A stretch of DNA of 64,000 nucleotides from Lepidodermella squamata. Lineage: Eukaryota; Animalia; Gastrotricha. The stretch's first letter is position 1. Each line of letters starts with the position of its first letter. Below the pieces are notes generated by a model. That model had not been told where the DNA came from. It saw only the letters and a list, made by a program, of their open reading frames with translations, and searched no databases. The translations under genes and the position numbers were made by a program. Of the stretch, positions 20,434 through 60,912 are shown one piece after another. The DNA is taken from NCBI GenBank assembly GCA_047495785.1, contig JBLDXI010000021.1, forward strand, positions 1,116,001 through 1,180,000, given 5' to 3'.

Positions 20434-22614
20434 ATGGTTACGCATCACTTGTCGTGGAAATTTAGTGTGCTATCCGTAATTTTCGGCTGCTTTTCGATAG
20501 TTTCAGCTAAATTGTCAATATCCCATGGTTCGATTTGCTTAACGGCAACACTATTGGGCTTTGCTGCTTTATGCACCGGCATCGCATCCGTTTTAGCCGG
20601 TTATTTGGCAGTTTTTCTCCCGATATCGCGCCTCCACAGTAGCATTCGTACCGCATTAGTTCACTTTTGCTGCAATGTCTATTTCAGCATTCAAGGTTAC
20701 TTCTACTGGCGGCGAATTTTCAGGTCAACAAATGACGTCAGGGAGGCTCAGGAGAACACTCTCAAGCGGATTTTGCGGCAAAATGCAGCGACTGAGTATG
20801 GCCAGAAAGTGAAACTTGGGGATATTAAAGACTCATCTCAGTATCGACTCAGACATCCTTTGACAAGCTATGATACTTTCCAGGAGTATATTGAAAAAAC
20901 TGCAAACGAAGGTTCTTTTTACACAGAATAGCAAGACCTCAATTTTTAAAACATTTTAATTCCAGGTGTGCAAAATATGTTGACTAGTCAGGATATTATT
21001 CAATTTTTCCTGAGTTCCGGAACCACTGGCAAAAGCAAGAAAATTCCTGGTAATGTAGTCGCAACGAATTCTCGAGGCGAGGGTCTTTACCAGTACGTAT
21101 TTTCATATTATACTTGTTACATTTTCTAAAGCTTTTTGACTACGATCCCAGCTTTCATTTCATCTCCTATTTGCTACCGACTGGTCCCTTCCTAGCACCC
21201 CTGAAATCGCTTTTAATCTCATTCAGCATCAAGCTTTCATCCACAGTGTGCGGCATTGTTATGACCCCTGTTTCTTACATACCCCGGCAGTTTCAATCTA
21301 CCGAAATATATCTGCCCCGTTCGACCCCGGATCAAGCTCGGATAGAGATTTCTGAAAGCGCCCAGACTTACTTGCACTGGCTTTTCGCCCTGTACGACAC
21401 CGAACTCTGCAGAATCGATTGCGCTTTCAGCGGCGGCCTCGTTGCGGCTCTTGAATTCCTCGCGAAAAATCACCAACAGCTTACTAAAGATATCGAATTT
21501 GGAATGATAAGTGACAGTCATTCTTTAGGAATTCCCGACGACGTAGCTGGAAGAGTCTCAGACCTAATGTGGAAAGATCCCGACAGAGCTAAGGAGATCG
21601 AAGCTGAATTCGCGAAAGGATTTCAAGGGATTGTCACTCGTCTTTGGCCTAGGGTCAACATGTGCTATGTCACTGTATCAGGAAGTCACGCCTGTGCCCT
21701 AGACCGGCTGAAGTTTTTCTTCGGACCTGATGTTCATTTCTACTCGATGATTTACGCATGTAGCGAGTGTGGCGTTATTGCTGCTAACATGGCTCATCCT
21801 CATCTCGGAAACCCTGTTTCGCTGAAACAACAGTTCACGATGCTGCCGGATGTTGGCGTCTTCTATGAATTCATTCCTATCGATGACGAAGGTGCAAAAA
21901 CTGTGGGAGAAACAGTGCTGTTGCATGAAGTTAAGGTTGGTTGCCGTTATGAGTTGGTAATCACCTGCGATGCTTCAGGGCTTTATCGCTACCGAATGGG
22001 GGATGTGTTGAAAGTCGTTGGACTCTACAACCAGTCGCCGGTCATTGAGTTTTGCTCTCGAATCGGAAGTATGCTAGACGTAGTCGGCGAGAAAACTGGC
22101 GAGGATTCTGTGTTCACAGCCCTGACGTCATGCGTCCAACACAACAAGTGGCTTGGCGCTAAATCCATCGTTAATTTCTCATCGACTGATTGCTTCTCAT
22201 TCACGAAGACGATAGAAGCCACGTCTGATAAAAGATTCGATAATATGAAAGGCGACCCTGGGTCTTTGTTCTACGTCATCTTCGTCGAACTTGAAGGGTT
22301 GGAAAGGAAGTTAACTGACGAAGAAACAACGGCTTTTGACAAAGAGCTGCAGAGATGTGCTCCGCGATATGAACATTATCGGAAAGTTGAAAGAATAACC
22401 GCGCCAAAGGTAACGTTTTGCATCTACGAAAAGCTGAATTTAATGAGATATGATTTTATTTCAGGTCTTTGTTTTGGCTCGCGGCTCCTTCGAGAAGATG
22501 AAGCAACAGTCTCTGGCCAAGTCAGGAAACGCTTCAAACCAATACAAGACACCACGATTTATCAAAGATATCGAAGCTATTCAGCTACTAACAGGCTATG
22601 CTTTTTTATATTGA
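20434..22614 (+). CDS. GHDC: GH3-domain protein (acyl-adenylating amido synthetase family), copy a
   Basis: Four exons with an N-terminal hydrophobic segment, LSSGTTGKSK, YACSE, GLYRYRMGD and C-terminal NQYKTPR. Confidence 0.92.
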
Positions 22615-23058
22615 CCTTAGGCCTATAACAAAAACAATATCAATGAAAATCCATAATAAACAAATGTAATGATTAATCGCTGCTGACAGTGGCTTGTGAA
22701 TCCTATAAATCCTACTCGACTACTGATATCGAAGTTTCAAAGCGGAACCGGAAAAACTCGGATTTGGCGTGGAATTTGATATCGAGGCATTTCGATATCT
22801 AGTGACGAACAAACCGGGAGCCAGTTTTGACTATTTTGTGATATTTTCAGGGTCATAAATTCTTGTTTTTTTTTATCAGTACGGGACCGCAGGCGAGACC
22901 TATAACCGAAAACTGTATATCCGCTGTCTTATCAGTAAACTGTTTCTGTTTTTTGCTCCATAATTGCAAGACTATTTTCCCCACAAAACACACCACAGAA
23001 TTGTCTTAAATTTACTTCATCATAGTGAATTGTTAATTAATAATTGTTACTGATCAAG

Positions 23059-31114: not shown

Positions 31115-33508
31115 ATGTACGGCTTACTTTTGAATGCATCTGTTGCCTATCTTCAACACGTCTATCCAGCGATTTACAAGGATGTATTGGAAGAACTCGG
31201 ATTTTCTGAGCAGGTATGTTTGAAAATATCCGCAAAAAGATCATGGTATTAAGGGCGATATTTTAAAGCGAGATCTGGATCAATACCAAATTTATTCGGA
31301 TAAATTATTTGGTCGCATCACGAAGCTCATGTCAGAAAAAGCTGGCTGTGCCGAGGATCAGTTGATGGAAAGTTTCGGCGAATATTTCGTCGACTATACC
31401 ATTCGCGTCGGCTACAACGATTTGCTCTTCTCGCTCGGACGGTAATAAAAAATTCGAAAAAAAATTCCTAAATTTTTTCGAACCTTTTAAGGACACTCTC
31501 GGACTTGTTCAACGAGCTCGATAATTTGGTATTTTTAAGAAAAATTACAATTTTATCAAAAAAATGTGGGGTATTTTACAGCACGAGTACATCCGATTTA
31601 CCTACCCAAAACTGAAGGCTCCTAGCTTTATTTGCCTGAACGAGTCTGTTGATGGAATAACCCTACTGTACAGAAGTCGCCGGCGTGGGTAATTTTTTAA
31701 ATAATTTTTTTGTAAATGTACAGTTTTTCTCTTCTTTCAGCTTTCAGTCCTACGTCAAAGGAATCCTGCGAGGAGTTTCGCAAAAGTACTACGCGACGTC
31801 CATAAGCATCGACATCGCATCGACTCGAGAAGTTGGCGAGCGTCTTGAAGTTGTTTACAAGTAAATTATACCGAAAAAATAGATCCGCCTTAATTTTTCC
31901 CGATCACTCTATTAGTCTTGTATTCGACAATTCAAGCCGATACGCCGCTAGCGGTGATGTCATCTTACGAGACACGTATTTCAAGAACAAGGTCATCATG
32001 GCTGATACTATTTTTGAACTCTACCCATTCCACATTTTAATCAACGATAACATGGGTATTAAATATATTTCCGTTTAATTATCACTTTTCTATCATTCGT
32101 TTTTCGAATCAGAAATCCTGTCAATTGGAAGAGGGTTAAAACAGCTTTTCCCTAAGGCGCTGCGAGAGGATTTCACGTCGCTGTTCGAGATCATCCGCCC
32201 GGATATTGAGCCGAATTTCAGAACAATCCAACACCACCTTAACAATATTTTCGAGCTCAATTGCATTTTGGCGCGTTTTGCAACGGGCGATGCGACCATG
32301 GACGCTTCGAAAGGCAAATCAGGCGGTTTGACAGTTAGTAAAACCGATCGAAGTAGCGCTGGCGATATACAGACCCAGATGACACCGGGTGGCATGCCGA
32401 ATCGATCGATGGATAGCACGAAAAGCGAAGATAATGGTAAAAAAAATCACCTCAAACCGAAAATTTATCAATTTTTCTGTTTTTTTCAGAGTTAATTTTG
32501 AAAGGTCAGATGATTTTCATTGAAGAGTGGGGCTCTGTGATGTTTGTCGGCTTTCCGCTTCTAATGATGCCTGAGCAAATGCTGAAAATTGGCCTGTATC
32601 TCAGCGACCTGAGCCTATTCGACTCGTCACGTGACCTAGTTATGGCCGCGGCTCAGGACGCCGCTGATCGGCATTTGACCCAGAAACTACTCTCAGTCAA
32701 GTCTGACATAGTCGCCGAGGCTAATCACATGGCTGAGAAGGCGAAGGAAGACTGGCAGCGGACCCACTACGCCCTACTGCCGTCGAGTGTCTCGCAGCGA
32801 TTGATGCGAGCTGAACCAGCCTATGCCATGGCTTGCATGTTCGAACACGCTAGCGTGATTTCGGTTGAAATAGTCGACGAGCGGTTGCACAGTGTTGACA
32901 AGGCGCTGTTCGGCCTCATCGAGGAGGTGCATAAAGAGGCGCAGCAAATTTGCAACAAGTACGACCTGTTCAAGGTCGATGGGCGGCTGACGGATTTCAT
33001 CATGCTAGCCGGGGTTCCGGATGTTACGAATACGCCTGAATTGCTGGCATTTCGAGCCGCGCAAATGCTAGCTAACCAATACACGGTTCGAATCGGCATT
33101 GCAACGGGCCAAGTTGCAGCGGGTGTCATCGGGACTAAGCTTTTAGCGTACAAGTAAGCTTTTTCAGTCTGATAAATCCGATTATTAACGAAGCCTTGAA
33201 AAATTTAATTATTATTTTTATCCGCTATTATAATATAGGCCATTTGGTACTGCGGTGAAGTCGAGCCGGAAATTGATGCTTATCTCTACGGTTCGTCGAA
33301 TTCTTGTTGATGAAGCCACGTGTCAGGCGTGCGCTAATGAGAAGGACGTAGAGAGCGAGCCGGGGCCTGAATCACAGGATTCGCAGGTTAATTTTTTTCT
33401 AATATTATCTTTTGAGTATTACTATCTATTTTTCAGTTAAGTCACAAGACTTACTGGATTCGAACGAGGAAAACAACAAAAGAACCTGGCTCTACAAAGA
33501 AGAAGTAA
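31115..33508 (+). CDS. Atypical soluble guanylate-cyclase-like protein (H-NOX + HNOBA + degenerate cyclase domain), many short exons
   Basis: MYGLLL start, FGEYF, LDNL|HEY proximal His, PSF, YRSRRRG|[33 protein letters not shown] and [15 protein letters not shown]. Confidence 0.9.
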
Positions 33509-33861: not shown

Positions 33862-36175
33862 TCAACAGGCCAGTATCACGTTCGAATAATCGCCACACGG
33901 TGATTCCGGTAATTTAGCTGGACACTCCTCGTCCCAGCCAATGCGCTCGCCTGAAGCTGTTTTAGATACGCCATTATTATTCGATATTTGAGGTACAAAT
34001 CGAAGGAACTTTACCTTTATTTTGCTCGACCAACCAATCATAGAGAGGCTTGAAATAATCGACTATCGCAGTTGAGTCCAACTTGCGGCTTCCCGTCAAT
34101 TTTTCCAGCACATCAGGATAAGGCTTCGATTTACCAAGAGCCATTGCTTCTCTCAGAGCAGATGTTTCGTCTTTGTGGCCACTGATGTCGCATAGATGGT
34201 AGTCCTTGGTATATCCGATTTTCCGGCAAAGATGCCGGTGCGCTTGAAACTGCAAAATGTGGGCGTAAAAGTAGCGGTCGTAAGGCACAGATGAGGCTAT
34301 GTGATATTTCGCCCCGGCATCGAAGTCATTTTCAGTCCTATGAACTGGCGGTACAAAACCTTGATATCGGCACTTCATCTTCCACCACTCAGAGTTGAGC
34401 TGTGAAAACGAAATGTTGCCGTCAAAAACTGCCCACCTGTATTTATCCATGATATAGCCGAATGGTAGGAAAGGAACTTTATCTAAAGCCATTGTCATCA
34501 ACGCATTAAGAGAAGTCTCTGCAAATAGCTAGTTGAAACGGTAAGATGCATGTTTAAGAGAAAAATCACTTTTATCTTCCTTGTAGTCCTTTGGCAATAG
34601 GCCAATCGCTTTAATATGAGTTGGCGCGAGTGCCGAGAGAGCAATAAGATCGCCAATGGCCTCGTGGAATCCCATATTAGCACCCTGACTGAACTCAACC
34701 GGTTGTTTGCTGTACTGCATGAAGTACTGTATGTGGCCCATTTCATGATGAGCAGTGTCGTAGTACTCTCTCGCAGCTTCAGCGCACATTTTGATTCGAA
34801 AATCAGTCTGGACTTTGAAATCCCACGCCGATCCATGGCACACCATCTTAGTATCATTCCTCTTCTCAAAAACCGACTTGGTCCAAAAATCTTCTACCAT
34901 CGGACGAAGGCCTATCGATTGGAAGAACCGATCAGCTCCCCGAAAAATAGATTCCACAGTTGATTTCTAGAATGTAAATATCAAAAGTAACCAAGCAAAA
35001 CGAGATAAACCTACGTTTTGTTTCAACAAAGCTGTTAAATCAAATTTAGGAGCTTCGGGATAAGGTTTTAACAGATCGATGAGATAGGTCCATTTCTGGC
35101 CATACATCTCAGACGAAACATGAGCTGGAATATGCCCGCTTGCTGGGAAGAATTTCGCGTATTTCGGATACCGAACTTCTCTCAGCTTCCTTCTCGCATA
35201 GGCGTGCAGTTGTTCATACAGGGGCTTGACGTTCAGCCAAGATTCTTCGAGTTGGTCAAAATACGTCGGATCATCGTGTACAACATCGGCAGTCCACATT
35301 TCCTTCGCATTGTTGAAGCCGTTCAGCTTTGCGGCTTCATTTAACAGCACGGCATAGGACATGAAATACCCTCTAATTTTCCGGCCGGTTTTATTACGCC
35401 AACCTTCCCAAGCCCATTGCAGGGTACAATAGTCGGTTGAGTGTTTCATAACATCGAACAAATCTGCGAAAATTGCGACAATAGAATTAAGTTCATCTGC
35501 AAAACATGTTATACCAGGCGCCAGTGGCAAACAGGTTCTTTTCGAAGATCCTCTGTCCATATGACATACTCGAGAAGAATGACTAGCCACCATAGCTCCA
35601 ACAGAATATTGGTACTGCATAGAATTTTCCTTCAACATTGAAATTTCGTCTTTCATCGGTCACTCACGTTTTCAAAGGCTTTTGCTGGTAGAGCTGCGGT
35701 TCCGATGTTGCTGTAGCCAATCCTTAGCCGTCGCCTTTCGTGTTGCGAACAATTCGCTTTCTCGCAGTCGATACATCTAGCTAAAGTCCAGTACTCTTTG
35801 TTTTTCATGGCCAACTGTTCACTCATCTCAAGCTTCAATCAATCGAGTGGCATTCAAAGTTGAAAATAATCATTTCATTTTTACCTTCACTTTCGAGTTG
35901 GCTTCTGTGATGTTAGTTGCCCAGTTCCAGCTGGCATACGCCGATTTCGTGGACAATTCAGCCATCGTTCCACTCCAGTCAGCAATATACTGCCGGATTT
36001 TCGTAATATCGGAAATAACGCCGCCTTTGCAGCTTTCATATTTCCCCTACATTTTTCGAGCAATCTCTCAATTCGGGAAAAGTTCAATTTCAGTAAAATA
36101 ACGTGGACGTACCTCTGCGATTTGAGCAAAGATAAGCCCGAAAATTGCTAATTGCATAACTGAGTTGTTGTCCAT
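33862..36175 (-). CDS. ACE: ACE-like peptidase (M2), no membrane anchor; copy 2
   Basis: Signal peptide, HHEMGH, EAIGD, FDAGAKYH..VPYDRYF; ends GDYSNVILAC*. Confidence 0.93.
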
Positions 36176-37882: not shown

Positions 37883-40384
37883 TTATGGGGCTAGAATAAC
37901 GTTTGTATAATCGCCACATGGTGATTCCGGTAAATTGACTGGACACTCATCGTCCCAACCAACACGTTCGCCAGACTCTGTTCAAGACAATCGTGTCAGT
38001 ATTATTTAAGGAAAGCATCAGCTATCATACCTTTGTTCTGCTCGACCAGCCAATCATAAAGAGGCTTGAAATAATCGACCATTGCAGTTGAGTCCAGCTT
38101 ACGGCTGCCCGTCAGTATTTCCAGCACTTCAGGATATGGCCTTGATCTACCCAAAGCCAAAGCTTCTCTCAGGGCAGATGTTTCGTCTTTGTGACCACTT
38201 ATATCGCACAGATGATAGTCCTTGGTATAGCCAATCTTCCGGCAAAGATGACGGTGCGTTTGAAACTGTAACATGTAAGCGTAAAAGTAGCGGTCGTAAG
38301 CCATAGATCCCGCTACGTGGTGTTTCGCCCCGGCATCAAAGTCATTTTCTGTTCTACGAACCGGTGGTATTAAGCCTTGATACCGACATTTCATCTTCCA
38401 CCACTCAGCGTTGAGCTGAGAAAACGAGATGTTGCCATCAAAAACTGACCATCTGTACTTATCAACGATGTATCCGAACGGTAGAAAAGGAACTTTATCC
38501 AAAGCCATTGTCATCAACGCGTTCAGAGAAGTCCCTGCAAAAAATTCATCACATTTATAGCAAAATTTAGGAAAAGAAATCACTTTTATCCTCCTTGTAG
38601 TCTTTTGGCAGTAGGCCAATCGCTTTAATATGAGTTGGCGTGAGTGCCGAGAGAGCAATAAGATCGCCAATGGCCTCGTGGAATCCCCCATTTGCACCCT
38701 CGCGGAACTCGAACGGCTGTTTGCTATACTGCATGTGGTATTGCGTGTGGCCCATTTCGTGATGAGCGGTGTAGTAGTACTCTCGAGAAACTTCGGCACA
38801 CATCTTGACTCGAAAATCAGTCTGAACTTTGAAATCCCAGGCCGAGGCATGGCACACCATCTTTGTGTTATTTCTCCGCTCGAAAATCGAATTTGTCCAA
38901 TATTCTTTTAACATCGGAGGAAGCCCTATCGATTGGAAGAACCGATCAGCCTCCCGGAAAATGGATTGCACAGTTGATCCCTATTGAAATGACAACATGG
39001 AATTAACTGGAACACACGAGAGATAAGGTAGGCCATTATCCCTCAGAGTTTATCTGTCAAATTGTATGAAACTTCGAAGAATAGCATGCAAATAGCGGGG
39101 AATCGCTTCTAGGCGTTGTTTTAGTATGGGTCATGCAATTGTTCCTGATTGACCACGCAATGACCTTGACTTCGTTGACTAGATTAGAGATAAACCTACG
39201 TTTTTTTTCAGCAAAGCTGTGATATCAAAGTCTGGAGCTTCCGGATATGGTTTCAGCAAATGGATGAGAGAGCCCCAATTCTGGCCATACATGTTCGACA
39301 AAATATGAGCAGGAATATGCCCGCTTGCTGGGAAGAATTTTGCGTATTTCGGATACCGAACGTCTCTCAGCTTCCTTCTCGCATAGGCGTGCAGTTGTTC
39401 ATACAGGGGTTTGACGTTCAGCCAAGATTCTTCGAGTTGTTCGAAATACGTCGGGTCATCGTGTATATTACTTGCTGTCAACAACTCCTTCGCGTTGTTG
39501 AAGCCGTCCAGTTTTGCGGCTTCGTTATACAGCAATGAATAGGCCATAAAATACCCTCTAATTTTCCGGCCGGTTTTATTACGCCAACCTTCCCAGGCCC
39601 ACTGCAGCGTACAATAGTCAGTTGATTGTCTCATGACATCGTCCAGTTCTGTAAAGAAATATCGATGATAATTAATAGCCATGTGCAAATTTCGCTAATT
39701 CATTTATATTACCTGGCTCTAGTTGCAGACAGGTTTTCTTCGTAGATGCTCTATCTACGTGACAAACTTGAGCCACTGAATGTGTTGCGAGCATTGCTCT
39801 GAGAGAATATTGGAACTGCGAATATTCGCTCGCCTTTAAAATTTGACAATTAGCTCTTGAAAGATTTCTCACGTTTGCGAAGGATTTGGAAGGTAGAGCA
39901 GCCGTTCCAATGCTGCTGTAGCCAAGCCAAAGTCGGCGCTTTTCTTCATGCGAACAATTCGCTTTCTCGCAGTCGATACACCTCGCAATACTCCAATACT
40001 CTTTGCTTTTAATGGCATAACGTTTATTCGGCGCTTCCTTCATACATAATTCAATTAATCGGGCTAAAATGATCAATCTTGATATACAACTTTACCTTCC
40101 TTATCGCATTTGCATCTGTTATATTACTTGCCCAGTTCCAGTTTGCATAAGCGGATTTCGTGGTCAGCTCAGCCATCGTTCGACTCCAATCGGCAATATA
40201 TTGCCGGATTTTCGTAATATCGGTGATAACGCCACCTTTGCAGTTCTCAAATTTACCCTGAAATTCGAAAAAACGTACAAGGTAGAGAATTTGATAGTAA
40301 ATTGCAGTTGAAAATATGTACCTCCGCAACTTGAATGACAACTAGGCCGAAAATCACCAGTGTACAGATCGCAAGTAGTTTCAT
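37883..40384 (-). CDS. ACE: ACE-like peptidase (M2), no membrane anchor; copy 3
   Basis: MKLLAICTLVIFGLVVIQVAE signal, [32 protein letters not shown]; ends GDYTNVILAP*. Confidence 0.93.
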
Positions 40385-41116: not shown

Positions 41117-43350
41117 TCATAAAGCGTGGTCCAGCAAAAGCTGAATAGCCTCGATATTTTTGATAAATCGCGGTGTCTTGTATTGATTGGAAGCGTTTCC
41201 TGACTTGGCCAGAGACTGCTGTTTCATCTTTTCGAACGAGCCGCGAGCCAAAACAAAAACCTGAAATAGTATAATTTTGCGTACACCTCAGATTTGTCTT
41301 GAATCAATTTACCTTGGGCCTCGCTATGCCTTCAACTTCTCGATAATGTTCATAGGCCGGAGCACTTTTCTGTAACTCTTTGTCAAAAGCAACAGTCTCT
41401 TCGTCAGCCAACTTCCTTTCAAATCCTTCAAGCTCAACGAAGATGGCATAGAACAAAGACCCAGGATCGCCTCTCATATGATCGAACCTCTTATCAGGCG
41501 TGGACTCTATCGTCTTCGTGAATGAAAAGCAATCAGTCGATGAGAAATTAACGATGGATTTAGCGCCAAGCCACTTGTTTTGTTGGACGCATGACGTCAG
41601 GGCTGTGAACACAGAATCCTCGCCAGTTTTCTCGCCGACTACGTCGAGCATACTTCCGATTCGAGAGCAAAACTCAATGACCGGCGACTGGTTGTAGAGC
41701 CCAACGACTTTCAACACATCCCCCATTCGGTAGCGATAAAGCCCTGAAGCATCGCAGGTGATTACCAACTCATAACGGCAACCCACCTTAACTTCATTCA
41801 ACAGCACCGATTCCCCTACAGTTTTTGCACCTTCGTCATCGATAGGGATGAATTCAAAGAAGACTCCGACATCCGGCAGCATCGTGAACTGCTGTTTCAG
41901 CGAAACAGGATTCCCGAGATGAGGATGGGCCATGTTAGCAGCAATAACGCCGCACTCGCTACATGCGTAAATCATCGCGTAGAAATGAACGTCTGGTCCG
42001 AAGAAAAACTTCAGCCGGTCCAGGGCACACGCGTGACTTCCTGATACAGTGACATAGCACATGTTGATCCTAGGCCAAAGACGAGTGACAATCCCTTGAA
42101 ATCCTTTCGCGAATTCAGCTTCAATCTCCTTAGCTCTGTCAGGATCTTTCCACATTAGGTCTGAGACTCTTCCAGCTACGTCGTCGGGAATTCCTAACGA
42201 TTGACTGTCACTTATCATTCCAAATTCGATATCTTTAGTAAGCTGTTGGTGATTTTTCGCGAGGAATTCAAGAGCCGCAACGAGACCGCCGCTGAAAGCA
42301 CAATCGATTCTGCAGAGTTCGGTGTCGTACAGGGCGAAAAGCCAGTGCAAGTAAGTCTGGGCGCTCTCGGAAATCTCTATCCGAGCAGGATCCGGGGTCG
42401 AACGAGGCAGATATAGTTCGAAAGTTTGAAACTGACGGGGTATGTAAGAAACCGGGGTCATGACAATTCCGTACAATGTGTATGGAAGCTTGGAGCTAAA
42501 CGAGATTAAAAGCGATTTCAGAGGCGCTAGGAAGGGACCAGTCGGTAGCAAATATGAGATGAAATGAAACCTTGAAAACGAAAATGTGGAAAAACGTATT
42601 ACCCAAACACCTAATAAGGAAAATGGCTTACAAGTAAAGACCCTCGCCGCGAGAATTTGTCGCAACCACGTTGCCAGGAATTGTTTTGCATTTTCCTGTC
42701 GTTCCGGAGCTCAGGTAAAACTGATTAATCTCTTGATCGGTCAATAAATTCTGCACACCTGTAATAAGAAAAATATGTTAGAACTCTAAACGTCTTGGGA
42801 CTTTGGAAATTTTGTCACATAGTAATAATCATTTGAGCCGCAAGCAGCGACTTTTTTGGGCGTGAAACAAACCTTCGTTTGCGGTTTTATCAATATACTC
42901 CTCGAAGGTTTCATAGCTTGATAAAGGATGCCTGAGTCGATACTGAGACGAGTCTTCAATATCCCCAAGTTTCACTTTCTTGCCATACTCAGTCGCTGCA
43001 TTTTGCCGCAAAATCCGCTTGAGAGTGTTCTCTTGAGCCTCCTTGACGTTATTTGTTGACCTGAAAATTCTCCGCCAGTAGAAGAAACCTTGAATGCTGA
43101 AATAGACATTCCAGTAAAAGTGCACTAAGGCGGCACGAATGCTTCGATGAAGGCGTGATACTGGGAGAAAAACTGCCAAATAAGCCGCTAAAATTGATGC
43201 AATACCAGTGCATAAGGCAGCAAAACCGAGTAGTGATGCCGTCAAGCAAATTGAACAATGGGATACTGAATATTTAGCTGAAATTATTGAAAAGCAGCCG
43301 AAAATTACGGATAACACAATAAATTTCCATGACAAGTGATGCCACACCAT
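41117..43350 (-). CDS. GHDC: GH3-domain protein, copy b (recent duplicate of copy a)
   Basis: Same four exons; LSSGTTG, YACSE, YRYRMGD, NQYKTPR; long stretches identical to copy a. Confidence 0.92.
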
Positions 43351-57142: not shown

Positions 57143-60100
57143 ATGCGGATTTTTCTCGCAACAGTTTTATCTTTAATTGCAATAATAACGCAGGTAATAA
57201 CGAAATCTGCCCTAGAATTGATTGAGACTGATTTTTCCCTTTTTTCAAGGTCGAATGCGTGACAAAATGCACAGGTAAACTTGTCACAGACGTGGCGGCA
57301 ATTAGAGCCAACATGACTAAATGGAACGAAACTTTCACCGCTGTTATGAATAATGTCACCGAAGCCGAATGGAAGTGGGCTTCGAACATCTCAATAGAAG
57401 CTGAAAATGTCAAGGTGAGTTATTGAAGAAATTCGCCGTTTCGGGAATTTAAAACAATTTTACAGGTGACTGAAAATGCGAAACTGGCACAACTCAGCAA
57501 AGAACTGTGGCAAACAGCTGCCTGCTATGACTGCAAAACTGCTGGCTGTACACCGGATGAAGTACGCCGGTTGTCCTATTATGAAAGTATAGGAACGGCC
57601 GCTTTGCCCGCTCAGCAGTTCAAAGATGTATAATATTTTCCCGAAAATTGCCGAATTTTGCAGGCTTTTAATCTCTCTCCCATTTAACAGTATTCCTACA
57701 TCCAAACTGCGATGGAAAATGTCTACGCTACCGCTAAGGTTTGCCCCTCAAAATCCGGGAAATCAGAATGTCTTCAATTGGATCCTGGTACAACATTTTA
57801 TTCCGAAATTAATCGATTCAAATAGAAAATATTTCAGACCTTTCTAACATAATGAGTGAATCTCGCGATTACTGTACTCTTCAATGGGCTTGGGAGGGCT
57901 GGCGTAACGAAACAGGTCGAAAGATGCGAGGCTTCTTCACATCCTACGTCATTGTTAGCAACGAGGCAGCTAAAATGAATGGTGAGTACTTACCGTATTT
58001 TTTTTCAAATTTCAAATTTTTCAGTGAACTGTGATTTCTATGACCGTTGAAAGTGAAAAGTAGGATCTTGCTAATTTTTTTGTATTTTCCATATCACTTG
58101 AAGACTATTTTTGGATTTCAAGATTTTCTGACTCAGTTTTTGTCGAGGATTTTAAATTTTCAAATTTCAGACCTTTATGAGGCCCGAGTGTGTTCAATTC
58201 AGGCTGTTCTAGAGACACTAGCTTGATCCGAACAACATTTTTAAATATTTAGCTAGACTCCTCACCTCAGATTATCGTAAGCAATTTTGACAGCGCATAA
58301 GAAAATAGCGCCTATAAGATTTGCGTTTTTTGCATCAATTAATATTCCCCCACGCAGTAAATTCTTATGCACTTTTTTGACATAAATATTTTTCGCTTGT
58401 TAACTTTGAAGCCAAAATTCTCAGCAACCGTGATGACAATCAACCTATTTTTTTATATCGTTCGACTTGGCGTTAACTGATCTTGAATGTGTCAAAATCT
58501 CACGATATCAAAATAACTTTTTCCAAAGCCCACTTTTCACTTGTTAGCGGCTCTATTTAACCCTTTAATTATTTATCCGCGGGAGAAAACATATTTGACC
58601 GCAGTTCTAGGGGTTCACGATTTTGAAATCCGTTTGTCTTTACTTATCACCGTTAAGGCTGTACTGTGTAAGAAATCGTCCTATCCGCCCAGCTGATTTC
58701 AGACGATTTTTCGAACACCCTGATTTCTGTGTCTGCTGCCTTCAGCTTTGGAATTTCAGATTACAAATTATTCCCATGAATGTCCCTAAGATTCTCCCTC
58801 ACTTATATCACCGACAAAATTCAGTTTAAAAAAGTTTTAGAGGCTCAGCATTCAGATCTGAATTCAGCTTTTCAAGTTATTCCTTGCGACAGTTTTTGCA
58901 GCACAAAAATCACGCACTCCGCCTGTATAGGTCTGGGCGGATAGGACGAATTCGGCCAGTTTGATTGAATTTCAATAGTGTCTTCATTTTTAATTTCCAA
59001 CTCGAAACAATTTACACAGAGGTAAATGAGACTATGACGGAAACGGTGGTATTTTTTGTTTGATCAAAAATGATCAGAACCCTATGAAATTTCAAGTTTA
59101 AAAAAAATCGAAATTTCAATCTCAGGTTGACTATTTTCAAATTGCTAGTACGTCCTGACCATGCAGGATAACGGTGCCCTGGTCTCAAAACCTTGTAGCC
59201 AACATCGAAAAGTAATATTCCTCAAAAACGCGATCAAAAATTCATCGAATTCAATTTTCTTGCGAAATTGCGAAATCGTCCTTCCCGCCGTGAAAGGGTT
59301 AAATTGCAAAAATTTCCGTCTGGAATCCACAATCCACAAGCCACACTCATCGAAAGTTTCTAACCTCAATTTCAAAAATGAATCTTTCAATTTATTCGAC
59401 CCTATTAAATTGATTTTATCTATAGGATTTGCTGATGCTAAGGAAATGTGGACAAAGCCGTACACTCGCGATGAGCCGACATTTTTCGAGCAAATGGAGC
59501 AGGCCTGGCGAGACGTGAAGCCACTCTACCAGGAACTTCACGCTTACACAAGACGAAAGTTACTATCGACGATTTACAAAGATTACGCGAAACACTTCCC
59601 CAGCAGCCGTCACATTCCGGCTCACCTGCTCGGAAATATGTGGGCGCAGGAGTGGACGGGACTTTACGACATCCTTGTACCTTACTCGGACGCAGCGGCT
59701 ATCGACATTTCAATCCTTCTGAAGCAAAACGTTCGTAAAATTCCCTGTTGATCTGGAATTTATTTATTTCCCATATTTTAGAAATCCGGCGTAATGGATT
59801 TGTTCCAAGAATCGGACCGATTTTTCCAATCGATAGGAATGGAGCCGATGACCACTGATTTTTGGAAAAAATCTATTTTCACGCGACCAACTGATAACAC
59901 GCAAATGGTCTGCCACGCTTCGGCCTGGGATTTTTTCCGGAAAACAGATTTCCGCATCAAAATGTGTACCCAAGTCAACCAGGAAGATTTTCAAACGGTT
60001 CATCACGAAATGGGTCACATCCAGTACTTCATGCAATACAAAGACCAGCCTATGGAATTTCGTGATGGCGCTAATTCTGGTTTCCATGAGGCGATCGGTG

Positions 60101-60912
60101 ACCTTATTGCGCTATCTGTCATGACCCCGAAGCACTTGAAGGCTATCGGCCTTTTGCCGTCAACATTCGTCGAGGATGAGCGTAATTTTCTTGAAATATC
60201 TGTAGTTTTCCTTGATTTTTCTGTTTTTGTAGATACCAATCTAAACGCTTTGATGATGACCGCACTTCAAAAGGTTGCGTTTCTACCGTTCGGATATTTG
60301 ATGGATAAATATCGATGGGCGATTTTCGAGCGGAAAGTCGGTTTCGCCGATTTGAATGCTGAATGGTGGAAGCTGCGGTGTCAAATGCAGGGCATTTCGC
60401 CGCCGGTAATGCGAACTGAGGAGGATTTCGACGCCGGCGCCAAGTACCACATTCCGGCCTCGGTACCCTACGACCGTTACTTTTTCTCGCACATCCTCCA
60501 GTTCCAAGCTCACCGGGCCATTTGCCAACGGATGAATATTACAAAAGATTTTCACAAGTGCGATATTTTCGGGCAGAAGGAGGCCACCTCGGCGCTGCGC
60601 CGTGCCCTAGCGCTGGGCTCGTCCCGGCCGTACCCGGAAGTGATGGAAATTCTGACCGGAAGCCGGACACTCGACTCAACAGCCTTGGTTGACTATTTCG
60701 CGCCACTCTACCGGTGGCTGAAAGAGCAAAATAAAAACGAAGAAAAAACTTCTTGGGATGAAAGCTGTCCGAGCAGCACACCGACATCGCCCTGCGGTGA
60801 TTATCAAGCCATTAAGCTTCAACAATCGAATAACGCGGTTATAACTGGGCAAAAATGGTCTGAAGTCTTATACTCTCTCGCTTTATTTATCATTATGACC
60901 GTAAGGCATTAA
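57143..60912 (+). CDS. ACE: ACE-like peptidase (M2) with a GPI-like hydrophobic tail; copy 5
   Basis: MRIFLATVLSLIAIITQ signal, LGNMWAQ, HHEMGH, EAIGD, FDAGAKYHIPASVPYDRYF; tail SNNAV..VLYSLALFIIMTVRH*; one intron of about 1.4 kb. Confidence 0.93.
58561..59298. mobile_element. piggyBac-like non-autonomous element in an ACE5 intron
   Basis: TTAA|CCCTTT...AAAGGG|TTAA; internal inverted repeat TCGTCCTATCCGCCCAG (about 58676) / CTGGGCGGATAGGACGA (about 58933). Confidence 0.7.

Follow-up and report, generated by a model that had tools for sequence, protein, structure and literature searches.

The gene at the locus and its closest relatives

The window analysed here, meaning the whole stretch of 64,000 nucleotides taken from contig JBLDXI010000021.1 of the gastrotrich Lepidodermella squamata, contains on its forward strand, at 31115..33508, a gene resembling those of soluble guanylyl cyclases (sGCs). 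The encoded protein combines the residues of an intact heme pocket with a cyclase homology domain in which both halves of the catalytic site are degenerate. To our knowledge, the H-NOX sensors of every studied animal signal by synthesis of cyclic GMP (cGMP), and where one half-site of a subunit is defective, a partner makes up for it. The present protein is distinguished by a cyclase domain that is dead in both halves, although this member of the sGC family is conserved and expressed. The gene is built from the following parts.

31115..33508 (+): full coding extent of the sGC-like gene, with 627 codons and a stop codon on 10 exons; spliced frame open throughout
31115..31213 (+): exon 1, residues 1-33; N-terminus of H-NOX, MYGLLL
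31269..31441 (+): exon 2, residues 34-91; H-NOX, Pfam HNOB 30.8 bits; joint of intron 2 present in complementary DNA (cDNA)
31492..31528 (+): exon 3, residues 91-103; LDNL at its end; loose cDNA ends at 31528/31581 carry the neighbouring exon's sequence
31582..31688 (+): exon 4, residues 104-139; His104 (31582-31584), Pro117 and Tyr133-Ser135-Arg137 (31669-31683); HNOB 31.8 bits
31741..31860 (+): exon 5, residues 139-179; Tyr143 (31751-31753); joints of introns 4 and 5 present in cDNA
31916..32055 (+): exon 6, residues 179-226; end of H-NOX and start of HNOBA/PAS
32113..32436 (+): exon 7, residues 226-334; HNOBA/PAS (Pfam HNOBA 30.4 bits) and a fast-evolving low-complexity linker, residues 286-333
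32490..33153 (+): exon 8, residues 334-555; C-terminal part of HNOBA (76.7 bits), coiled coil and, from about 32822, the pseudo-cyclase up to two thirds of its length
32867-32869, 32978-32992 and 33089-33091 (+): within exon 8, Glu460, Asp497 with Thr501, and Arg534, in that order (see the site table below)
33239..33386 (+): exon 9, residues 555-604; Lys555, Lys562, Arg565 and Lys566
33437..33508 (+): exon 10, residues 605-627 and TAA; KTYWI, which is what is left of the cyclase C-terminus, with a polybasic tail and without a CaaX box

The coding model comprises 1884 nucleotides and 627 residues with no internal stop, and its nine introns measure 50-85 nucleotides and are all of the GT-AG kind. 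The very short introns, with T-rich acceptors ending in AG, are those of a eukaryotic-type gene. An initial annotation made from the letters alone had described a frame that appears to stay open across all exons, and the ten-exon model agrees; all motifs quoted there are present in a single spliced frame (LDNL/HEY spanning intron 3, APSF, YRSRR, GFQSY, VISVE, KVDGRLT and the motif that starts with LAYK). Database, Pfam and PDB searches were run exon by exon, and the joined 627-residue model was used in the local alignment, the tree, the substitution counts and the hhalign comparison. Pfam, PDB and alignment results give the domain order H-NOX, HNOBA/PAS, coiled coil and cyclase homology domain, which is the architecture of soluble guanylyl cyclases.

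A paralogue on contig C13 of the same genome has six exons and 625 residues, shares 59% overall identity and the same dead-site residues with the window protein, and has no CaaX box; its whole sensor half lies in one exon. When exon 1 of this paralogue was used in a word search, the matches were Gyc-88E-like proteins at no more than 37% identity and one fragment, P0042. The 25.9-kb ENA metagenome scaffold of P0042 carries two tandem genes, A and B. Gene A (META_A) is the orthologue of the window gene, with 66% identity and a gap of Ns within its H-NOX domain. Gene B (META_B) is the orthologue of the C13 paralogue, with 65% identity; about 25 nucleotides encoding 10 residues are missing from it at L045:5990-6005 and the frame is shifted, which may be either a real lesion or an assembly error. 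In a maximum-likelihood tree, the window protein pairs with META_A (96/93) and the paralogue with META_B (99/95), and the four stand together at 100/100 on a long stem of 1.65. Given this pairing, the duplication is older than the divergence of the two species, each of which has kept both copies. Rooted on an alpha subunit, the tree tentatively places the four-member clade within the atypical sGCs, the order of the deeper forks being uncertain.

A profile search with exon 8 against 1.84 billion representative proteins returned only P0042 with a value better than 1e-30. The other matches were ordinary sGCs of at most 114 bits, which bear Gyc-88E-like or gcy-31-like names and come from molluscs, hemichordates, arthropods, amphioxus, a shark and Pristionchus. 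The word search with exon 8 gave only the two proteins of the ENA scaffold, and the scan of JGI metagenome contigs with the exon-8 profile gave no relative. Across the 1.8-5.8 billion proteins searched nothing else close was found, the nearest named proteins being oxygen-sensing cyclases of the Gyc-88E/GCY-31 type, and the literature searched for sGCs with a pseudo-cyclase domain describes no protein of this kind.

The relatives also differ in their introns, with nine in the window gene, five in the C13 paralogue and three in orthologue A; the only introns common to most of them are a phase-2 intron at AYK/PFG and the last intron. Since the numbers differ among such close relatives, intron turnover in the lineage seems fast. 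Intron 3 of the C13 paralogue (L039:4183-4241), which is absent from the window gene, starts with a near-copy of the following exon (GGTGAGCCAACC versus GGTGAACCAGCT) and looks like an intron gained when a short segment was duplicated in tandem, giving rise to a new GT donor.

Heme pocket and cyclase site

The heme pocket of the sensor half is intact, with the proximal His104, Pro117 (in APSF), Tyr133-x-Ser135-x-Arg137 and Tyr143 (in GFQSY). The marks of heme binding in the H-NOX family (PF07700), namely the proximal His, Y-x-S-x-R and Pro, are all present, and exons 2 and 4 both pass the HNOB cut-off. Aligned by HMMER (E 8.5e-27), the paralogue's intron-free sensor exon places a tyrosine opposite Ile145 of Manduca beta1 (6pas_B), with His and Y-x-S-x-R in register, and the alignment of the window protein with the paralogue is free of gaps across the distal-Tyr region, so that Tyr143 occupies the position of beta1 Ile145. 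The initial annotation had called the heme features intact and had assigned the tyrosine of YRSRRRGFQSY to this very position; the residues and their register against beta1 uphold both statements. According to the residue table, the distal tyrosine is common to the window protein and its nearest named relatives, the Gyc-88E-like proteins, and Tyr143 is thus the distal tyrosine typical of O2-binding H-NOX domains (Tt H-NOX, Gyc-88E and GCY-35 type). The label 'O2-type' rests on this conserved residue, and O2 binding is a prediction from it. A distal tyrosine is necessary for O2 binding but not sufficient. Its partners in the bacterial H-NOX network are Trp9 and Asn74 (PMC1435932).

In a profile-profile comparison by hhalign, the C-terminal 188 residues of the four clade members match canonical cyclase domains with a probability of 98.6%, an E of 1e-15 and 19% identity. 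In the PDB, exon 8 matches sGC alpha1 structures over its whole length (Manduca, E 1e-15; human, E 4e-13), with sGC beta1 also aligned, and its second half matches bacterial adenylyl cyclase and atrial natriuretic peptide-receptor cyclase domains (E 1e-5 to 7e-4); a PDB search with exon 9 alone (49 residues) gave nothing useful. The hhalign and PDB matches identify a true, strongly diverged cyclase homology domain. Pfam Guanylate_cyc matches only 25 residues of exon 8 and scores 20.3 bits, under the cut-off of 21.9, and the PF00211 scan of the genome did not detect the cyclase-like domain of the window gene. The catalytic positions, listed as in the CYG12 structure paper (PMC2576301), are occupied as follows.

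Metal Asp 1 (CYG12 Asp482): canonical Asp; Glu460 in the window protein (Gln in META_B)
Metal Asp 2 (CYG12 Asp527): canonical Asp; Thr501 in the window protein, followed by Asp502
Base Glu (CYG12 Glu523): canonical Glu; Asp497 in the window protein
Base Cys (CYG12 Cys592): canonical Cys; Lys555 in the window protein
Ribose Asn (CYG12 Asn599): canonical Asn; Lys562 in the window protein
Transition-state Arg (CYG12 Arg603): canonical Arg; Lys566 in the window protein (His in the paralogue lineage), with Arg565 one residue before
Triphosphate Lys (CYG12 Lys640): canonical Lys; absent from the window protein
Triphosphate Arg (CYG12 Arg571): canonical Arg; Arg534 in the window protein, retained

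Seven of the eight positions are replaced in all four clade members, and only the triphosphate Arg (R534) is left. Further, the G-F-T turn of the phosphate loop after strand beta1 is deleted and the loop region is 3-5 residues shorter in all four members, and the window protein lacks about 15 residues ahead of the RxGxxxG strand. The equipment of a catalytically competent class III guanylyl cyclase (the metal Asp pair, the guanine Glu/Cys, the ribose Asn, the transition-state Arg and the triphosphate contacts) is therefore not in place. The site table and the sub-cut-off Pfam score bear out two claims of the initial annotation: that both half-sites are degenerate (VISVE, KVDGRLT and others), and that the protein can supply neither alpha- nor beta-type catalytic residues, with both metal aspartates of the alpha type and the base, ribose, transition-state and triphosphate Lys positions of the beta type lost.

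The replacements Asp497, Thr501, Lys555 and Lys562 are identical in both paralogues and both orthologues. Such non-random changes, together with the retained Arg534, would fit a conserved pocket, and one explanation for them is a remodelled enzyme, either an odd cyclase or one with other nucleotide chemistry, in which Glu460 and Asp502 would be the metal ligands and the swapped Asp497/Lys555 would read the base. Indeed, Asp/Lys at the base positions mirrors the Lys/Asp of adenylyl cyclases. However, the G-F-T loop, the ribose Asn and the triphosphate Lys are gone, metal position 1 is Gln in META_B, and the domain scores under the Pfam cut-off. In mutagenesis studies of cyclases, single losses of such residues are reported to abolish activity, and we regard a remodelled enzyme as highly improbable.

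Expression, constraint and other H-NOX genes

Two public runs cover this stretch: X1 is cDNA, as seen from the SMART cDNA adaptor on a loose end, and X2 is DNA from a strain or sister species that is about 98% identical. In the X1 contigs, introns 2, 4, 5 and 7 are marked by GT..AG joints at precisely the modelled positions, and intron 9 by a skip of 50 nt; their loose ends at the junction of exons 3 and 4 carry the sequence of the neighbouring exon, and depth drops almost to zero across introns 1, 6 and 8. X2 has six indels, every one of them intronic or immediately 5' of the ATG and none in coding sequence. The 25 coding differences that are listed are without exception synonymous, eight being in the cyclase-like part, and the chance of such an outcome is about 1e-16 if synonymous sites make up 22.5% of the total and about 1e-10 at 40%. 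The gene is expressed, is under strong purifying selection and is not a pseudogene. A 33-nt skip at 32778-32812 in one X2 contig was examined and rejected as a deletion; the loose ends of this contig match the C13 paralogue, and the skip is a cross-match.

The dead cyclase site and the long branch of the clade (1.65) could be taken as signs of a decaying or neutral copy whose frame is open by chance, and the initial annotation had named neutral evolution as evidence that would speak against its own proposal. Spliced cDNA, 25 synonymous against no non-synonymous changes among the listed differences and the lack of any indel inside the coding sequence contradict it. Further, the intact orthologue and paralogue have the same domain, and identity across the pseudo-cyclase is 62% despite saturated synonymous sites. 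Decay is thus an explanation to which we attach next to no weight.

How strongly each domain is constrained can be read from the proportion of non-synonymous sites that differ (pN). The initial annotation had suggested ratios of non-synonymous to synonymous change (dN/dS) per domain, and this check succeeded only in part: between species and paralogues the synonymous sites are saturated (proportion differing, pS, 0.7-0.97), which makes the ratios uninformative, and pN per domain, used in their place, shows constraint everywhere except in the linker. Between species, H-NOX, PAS and coiled coil have a pN of 0.14-0.17, PAS and coiled coil being the best conserved parts; the pseudo-cyclase has 0.27 and the low-complexity linker 0.58. 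Comparing 0.27 with 0.14-0.17, the dead cyclase domain is constrained at about half the strength of the sensor. It has what defines a pseudoenzyme domain: it is homologous to an enzyme domain, lacks the catalytic residues, is expressed and is under purifying selection. The linker (32295-32436, residues 286-333), a stretch within HNOBA that is rich in Ser, Thr, Gly and Asn, was taken as an internal standard of near-neutral change; it is only 21% identical between the orthologues, varies in length and evolves nearly freely.

The genome (121 Mb, 151 contigs) holds seven H-NOX loci, and a scan with HNOBA yields the same seven and no extra one. Apart from the window gene and the C13 paralogue, these are five H-NOX/HNOBA genes with CaaX ends, which make up a second clade.

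L040, C1:2947000-2956500: H-NOX/HNOBA gene with CaaX end
L041, C28:1088000-1097500: H-NOX/HNOBA gene with CaaX end
L042, C28:1101000-1110500: H-NOX/HNOBA gene with CaaX end
L043, C33:1435000-1444500: H-NOX/HNOBA gene with CaaX end
L044, C28:697500-706000: H-NOX/HNOBA gene with CaaX end

Their CaaX boxes are CKVS, CPVS, CTIS, CITS and CNVS. Like the window protein, the five keep H-NOX and HNOBA intact, most of them with the Tyr, and have cyclase-like regions without the canonical motifs; unlike it, they end in a CaaX box and their cyclase domains are degenerate in other ways, L044, for example, having no phosphate-loop deletion. The two clades are sisters at 88/90, a moderate support for a grouping in which long-branch attraction is possible. 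The window gene and the C13 paralogue form a separate subfamily predicted to lack the CaaX lipid anchor. There are about 70 PF00211 matches in the genome, and none of the seven H-NOX loci coincides with one of normal strength, the best being 67 bits at C28:701734. By the HNOB, HNOBA and PF00211 scans, a canonical cyclase domain occurs in none of the seven H-NOX/HNOBA genes of this genome.

This inventory bears on a further explanation, in which the window protein would be a regulatory subunit: its pseudo-cyclase would pair with the cyclase domain of another protein, be it a receptor-type guanylyl cyclase or one of the CaaX-tailed sGC-like proteins, and gas would switch the cGMP output of that partner up or down. 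Cyclase domains of class III work in pairs, and inactive heterodimers of sGC subunits are known, with MsGC-beta3 cited in PMC1435932. The roughly 70 cyclase-domain matches speak for such a role, as does the fact that the dimerising parts are the most conserved of the protein. It is the PAS-like HNOBA and the coiled coil that make the dimer in the sGC family. However, coiled coils of the sGC type normally pair within the family only, no H-NOX/HNOBA gene of the genome has a canonical cyclase domain, and nothing links the window protein to any receptor cyclase. With neither half-site on offer, it could only silence a partner or act allosterically. We rate this role as rather unlikely. The initial annotation had offered a dominant-negative or allosteric partner and a cGMP-independent sensor as options. 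The cGMP-independent sensor is now favoured, and a dominant-negative partner of a catalytic sGC is the least likely of them, since the genome offers no soluble subunit whose site is complete and on which it could act.

Elsewhere in the window lie at least three genes resembling angiotensin-converting enzyme (ACE; Peptidase_M2) and two open frames of the GH3 family (acyl-acid amido synthetase-like) of about 450-500 residues, the latter in opposite orientation and about 20 kb apart.

33977..35656 (-): ACE-like gene
38002..38850 (-): ACE-like gene
59794..60912 (+): ACE-like gene
21114..22628 (+): GH3-family open frame
41304..42665 (-): GH3-family open frame

For one ACE-like exon, the best named relatives are only about 50% identical and come from many animal phyla; its closest matches are metagenome proteins.

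Proposed function and comparison with known systems

Collectively, we read the window gene, with moderate confidence, as a non-catalytic heme gas sensor and a functional member of a lineage-specific atypical (Gyc-88E/GCY-31-type) sGC branch, which probably senses gas and signals by a route other than cGMP synthesis. The protein would act as a homodimer, or as a heterodimer with the C13 paralogue, and its H-NOX domain would bind ferrous heme. The gas bound at the distal face would most likely be O2, with Tyr143 stabilising it; alternatively, the sensor may respond to nitric oxide (NO) or carbon monoxide (CO). From there the signal would travel via PAS and coiled coil to the two pseudo-cyclases, as it does in genuine sGC, where cryo-electron microscopy shows the sensor change reaching the cyclase pair by this path (PMC6839917). 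The pseudo-cyclase pair itself would be a docking or ligand-binding output module, not an enzyme. The same Asp/Thr/Lys/Lys in four sequences argues for a reshaped, more basic pocket that may have a use of its own.

Several considerations weigh against this reading. Heme binding, ligand preference and the loss of activity are all read from residues alone. Glu460 and Asp502, the latter beside Thr501, could in principle hold metal, and the retained Arg534 and Arg565 make some nucleotide binding possible. The pseudo-cyclase domain is split by introns and was scanned in exon pieces. The count of 25 to 0 concerns the best-supported subset, 23 further X2 read differences lying outside the listed set. 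Finally, the clade occurs in only two species, which limits the comparative test.

A wider proposition, which we put forward only tentatively, is that the whole sGC repertoire of this animal has turned into non-cGMP heme sensors; it comprises seven genes, of which the window gene and the C13 paralogue make up one clade and the five lipid-anchored proteins the other. The pocket of the window clade would have been rebuilt and made more basic (Asp497, Thr501, Lys555, Lys562 and Arg534), and a ligand or effector might be bound there in place of GTP turnover. If true, this would amount to a cGMP-independent output pathway for animal H-NOX gas sensing. Even for the single gene, a sensor has been kept under strong selection after the loss of both half-sites and without a canonical soluble partner in the genome; if gas is bound, heme sensing must couple to an output other than the protein's own cGMP synthesis. 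This raises the question of what a cyclase homology domain can do once it is no longer a cyclase, and the replacement residues that are identical in two paralogues and two species are targets for mutagenesis.

The window protein can be set beside three known systems. Gyc-88E of Drosophila and the GCY-31/GCY-35 type of C. elegans, which make cGMP, are the closest: they are the top database matches, they have the same domain order and the same His, Pro, Y-x-S-x-R and Tyr, and identity in the sensor half is about 32-37%. However, the Gyc-88E-like relatives keep all eight catalytic positions and the window protein keeps one; it also lacks the phosphate loop, has a deletion of about 15 residues before RxGxxxG, and belongs to a long-branch clade of its own. 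Partner-dependent sGC subunits (Gyc-89Da/Db-like, alpha and some GCY-31-like proteins) resemble it in that their catalytic site is incomplete and they need a partner, but they lose only one half, the 89D-like proteins lacking the metal Asp residues, and alpha and P. pacificus gcy-31 lacking Asn/Arg. The alignment with the Gyc-88E, Gyc-89D and GCY-31 types, which the initial annotation had put forward as a check, thus separates three states: 88E-like proteins keep all eight residues, half-dead subunits lose one set and the window clade loses both. Since both halves are missing from the window clade, no pairing can rebuild a site. Bacterial stand-alone H-NOX proteins offer a working analogy for a heme gas sensor with an output other than its own catalysis. 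They are single-domain proteins encoded beside kinases or diguanylate cyclases, whereas the window gene encodes a four-domain animal protein whose putative output module is a dead cyclase. The window clade forms a natural parallel to the pseudokinase domains found in receptor cyclases.

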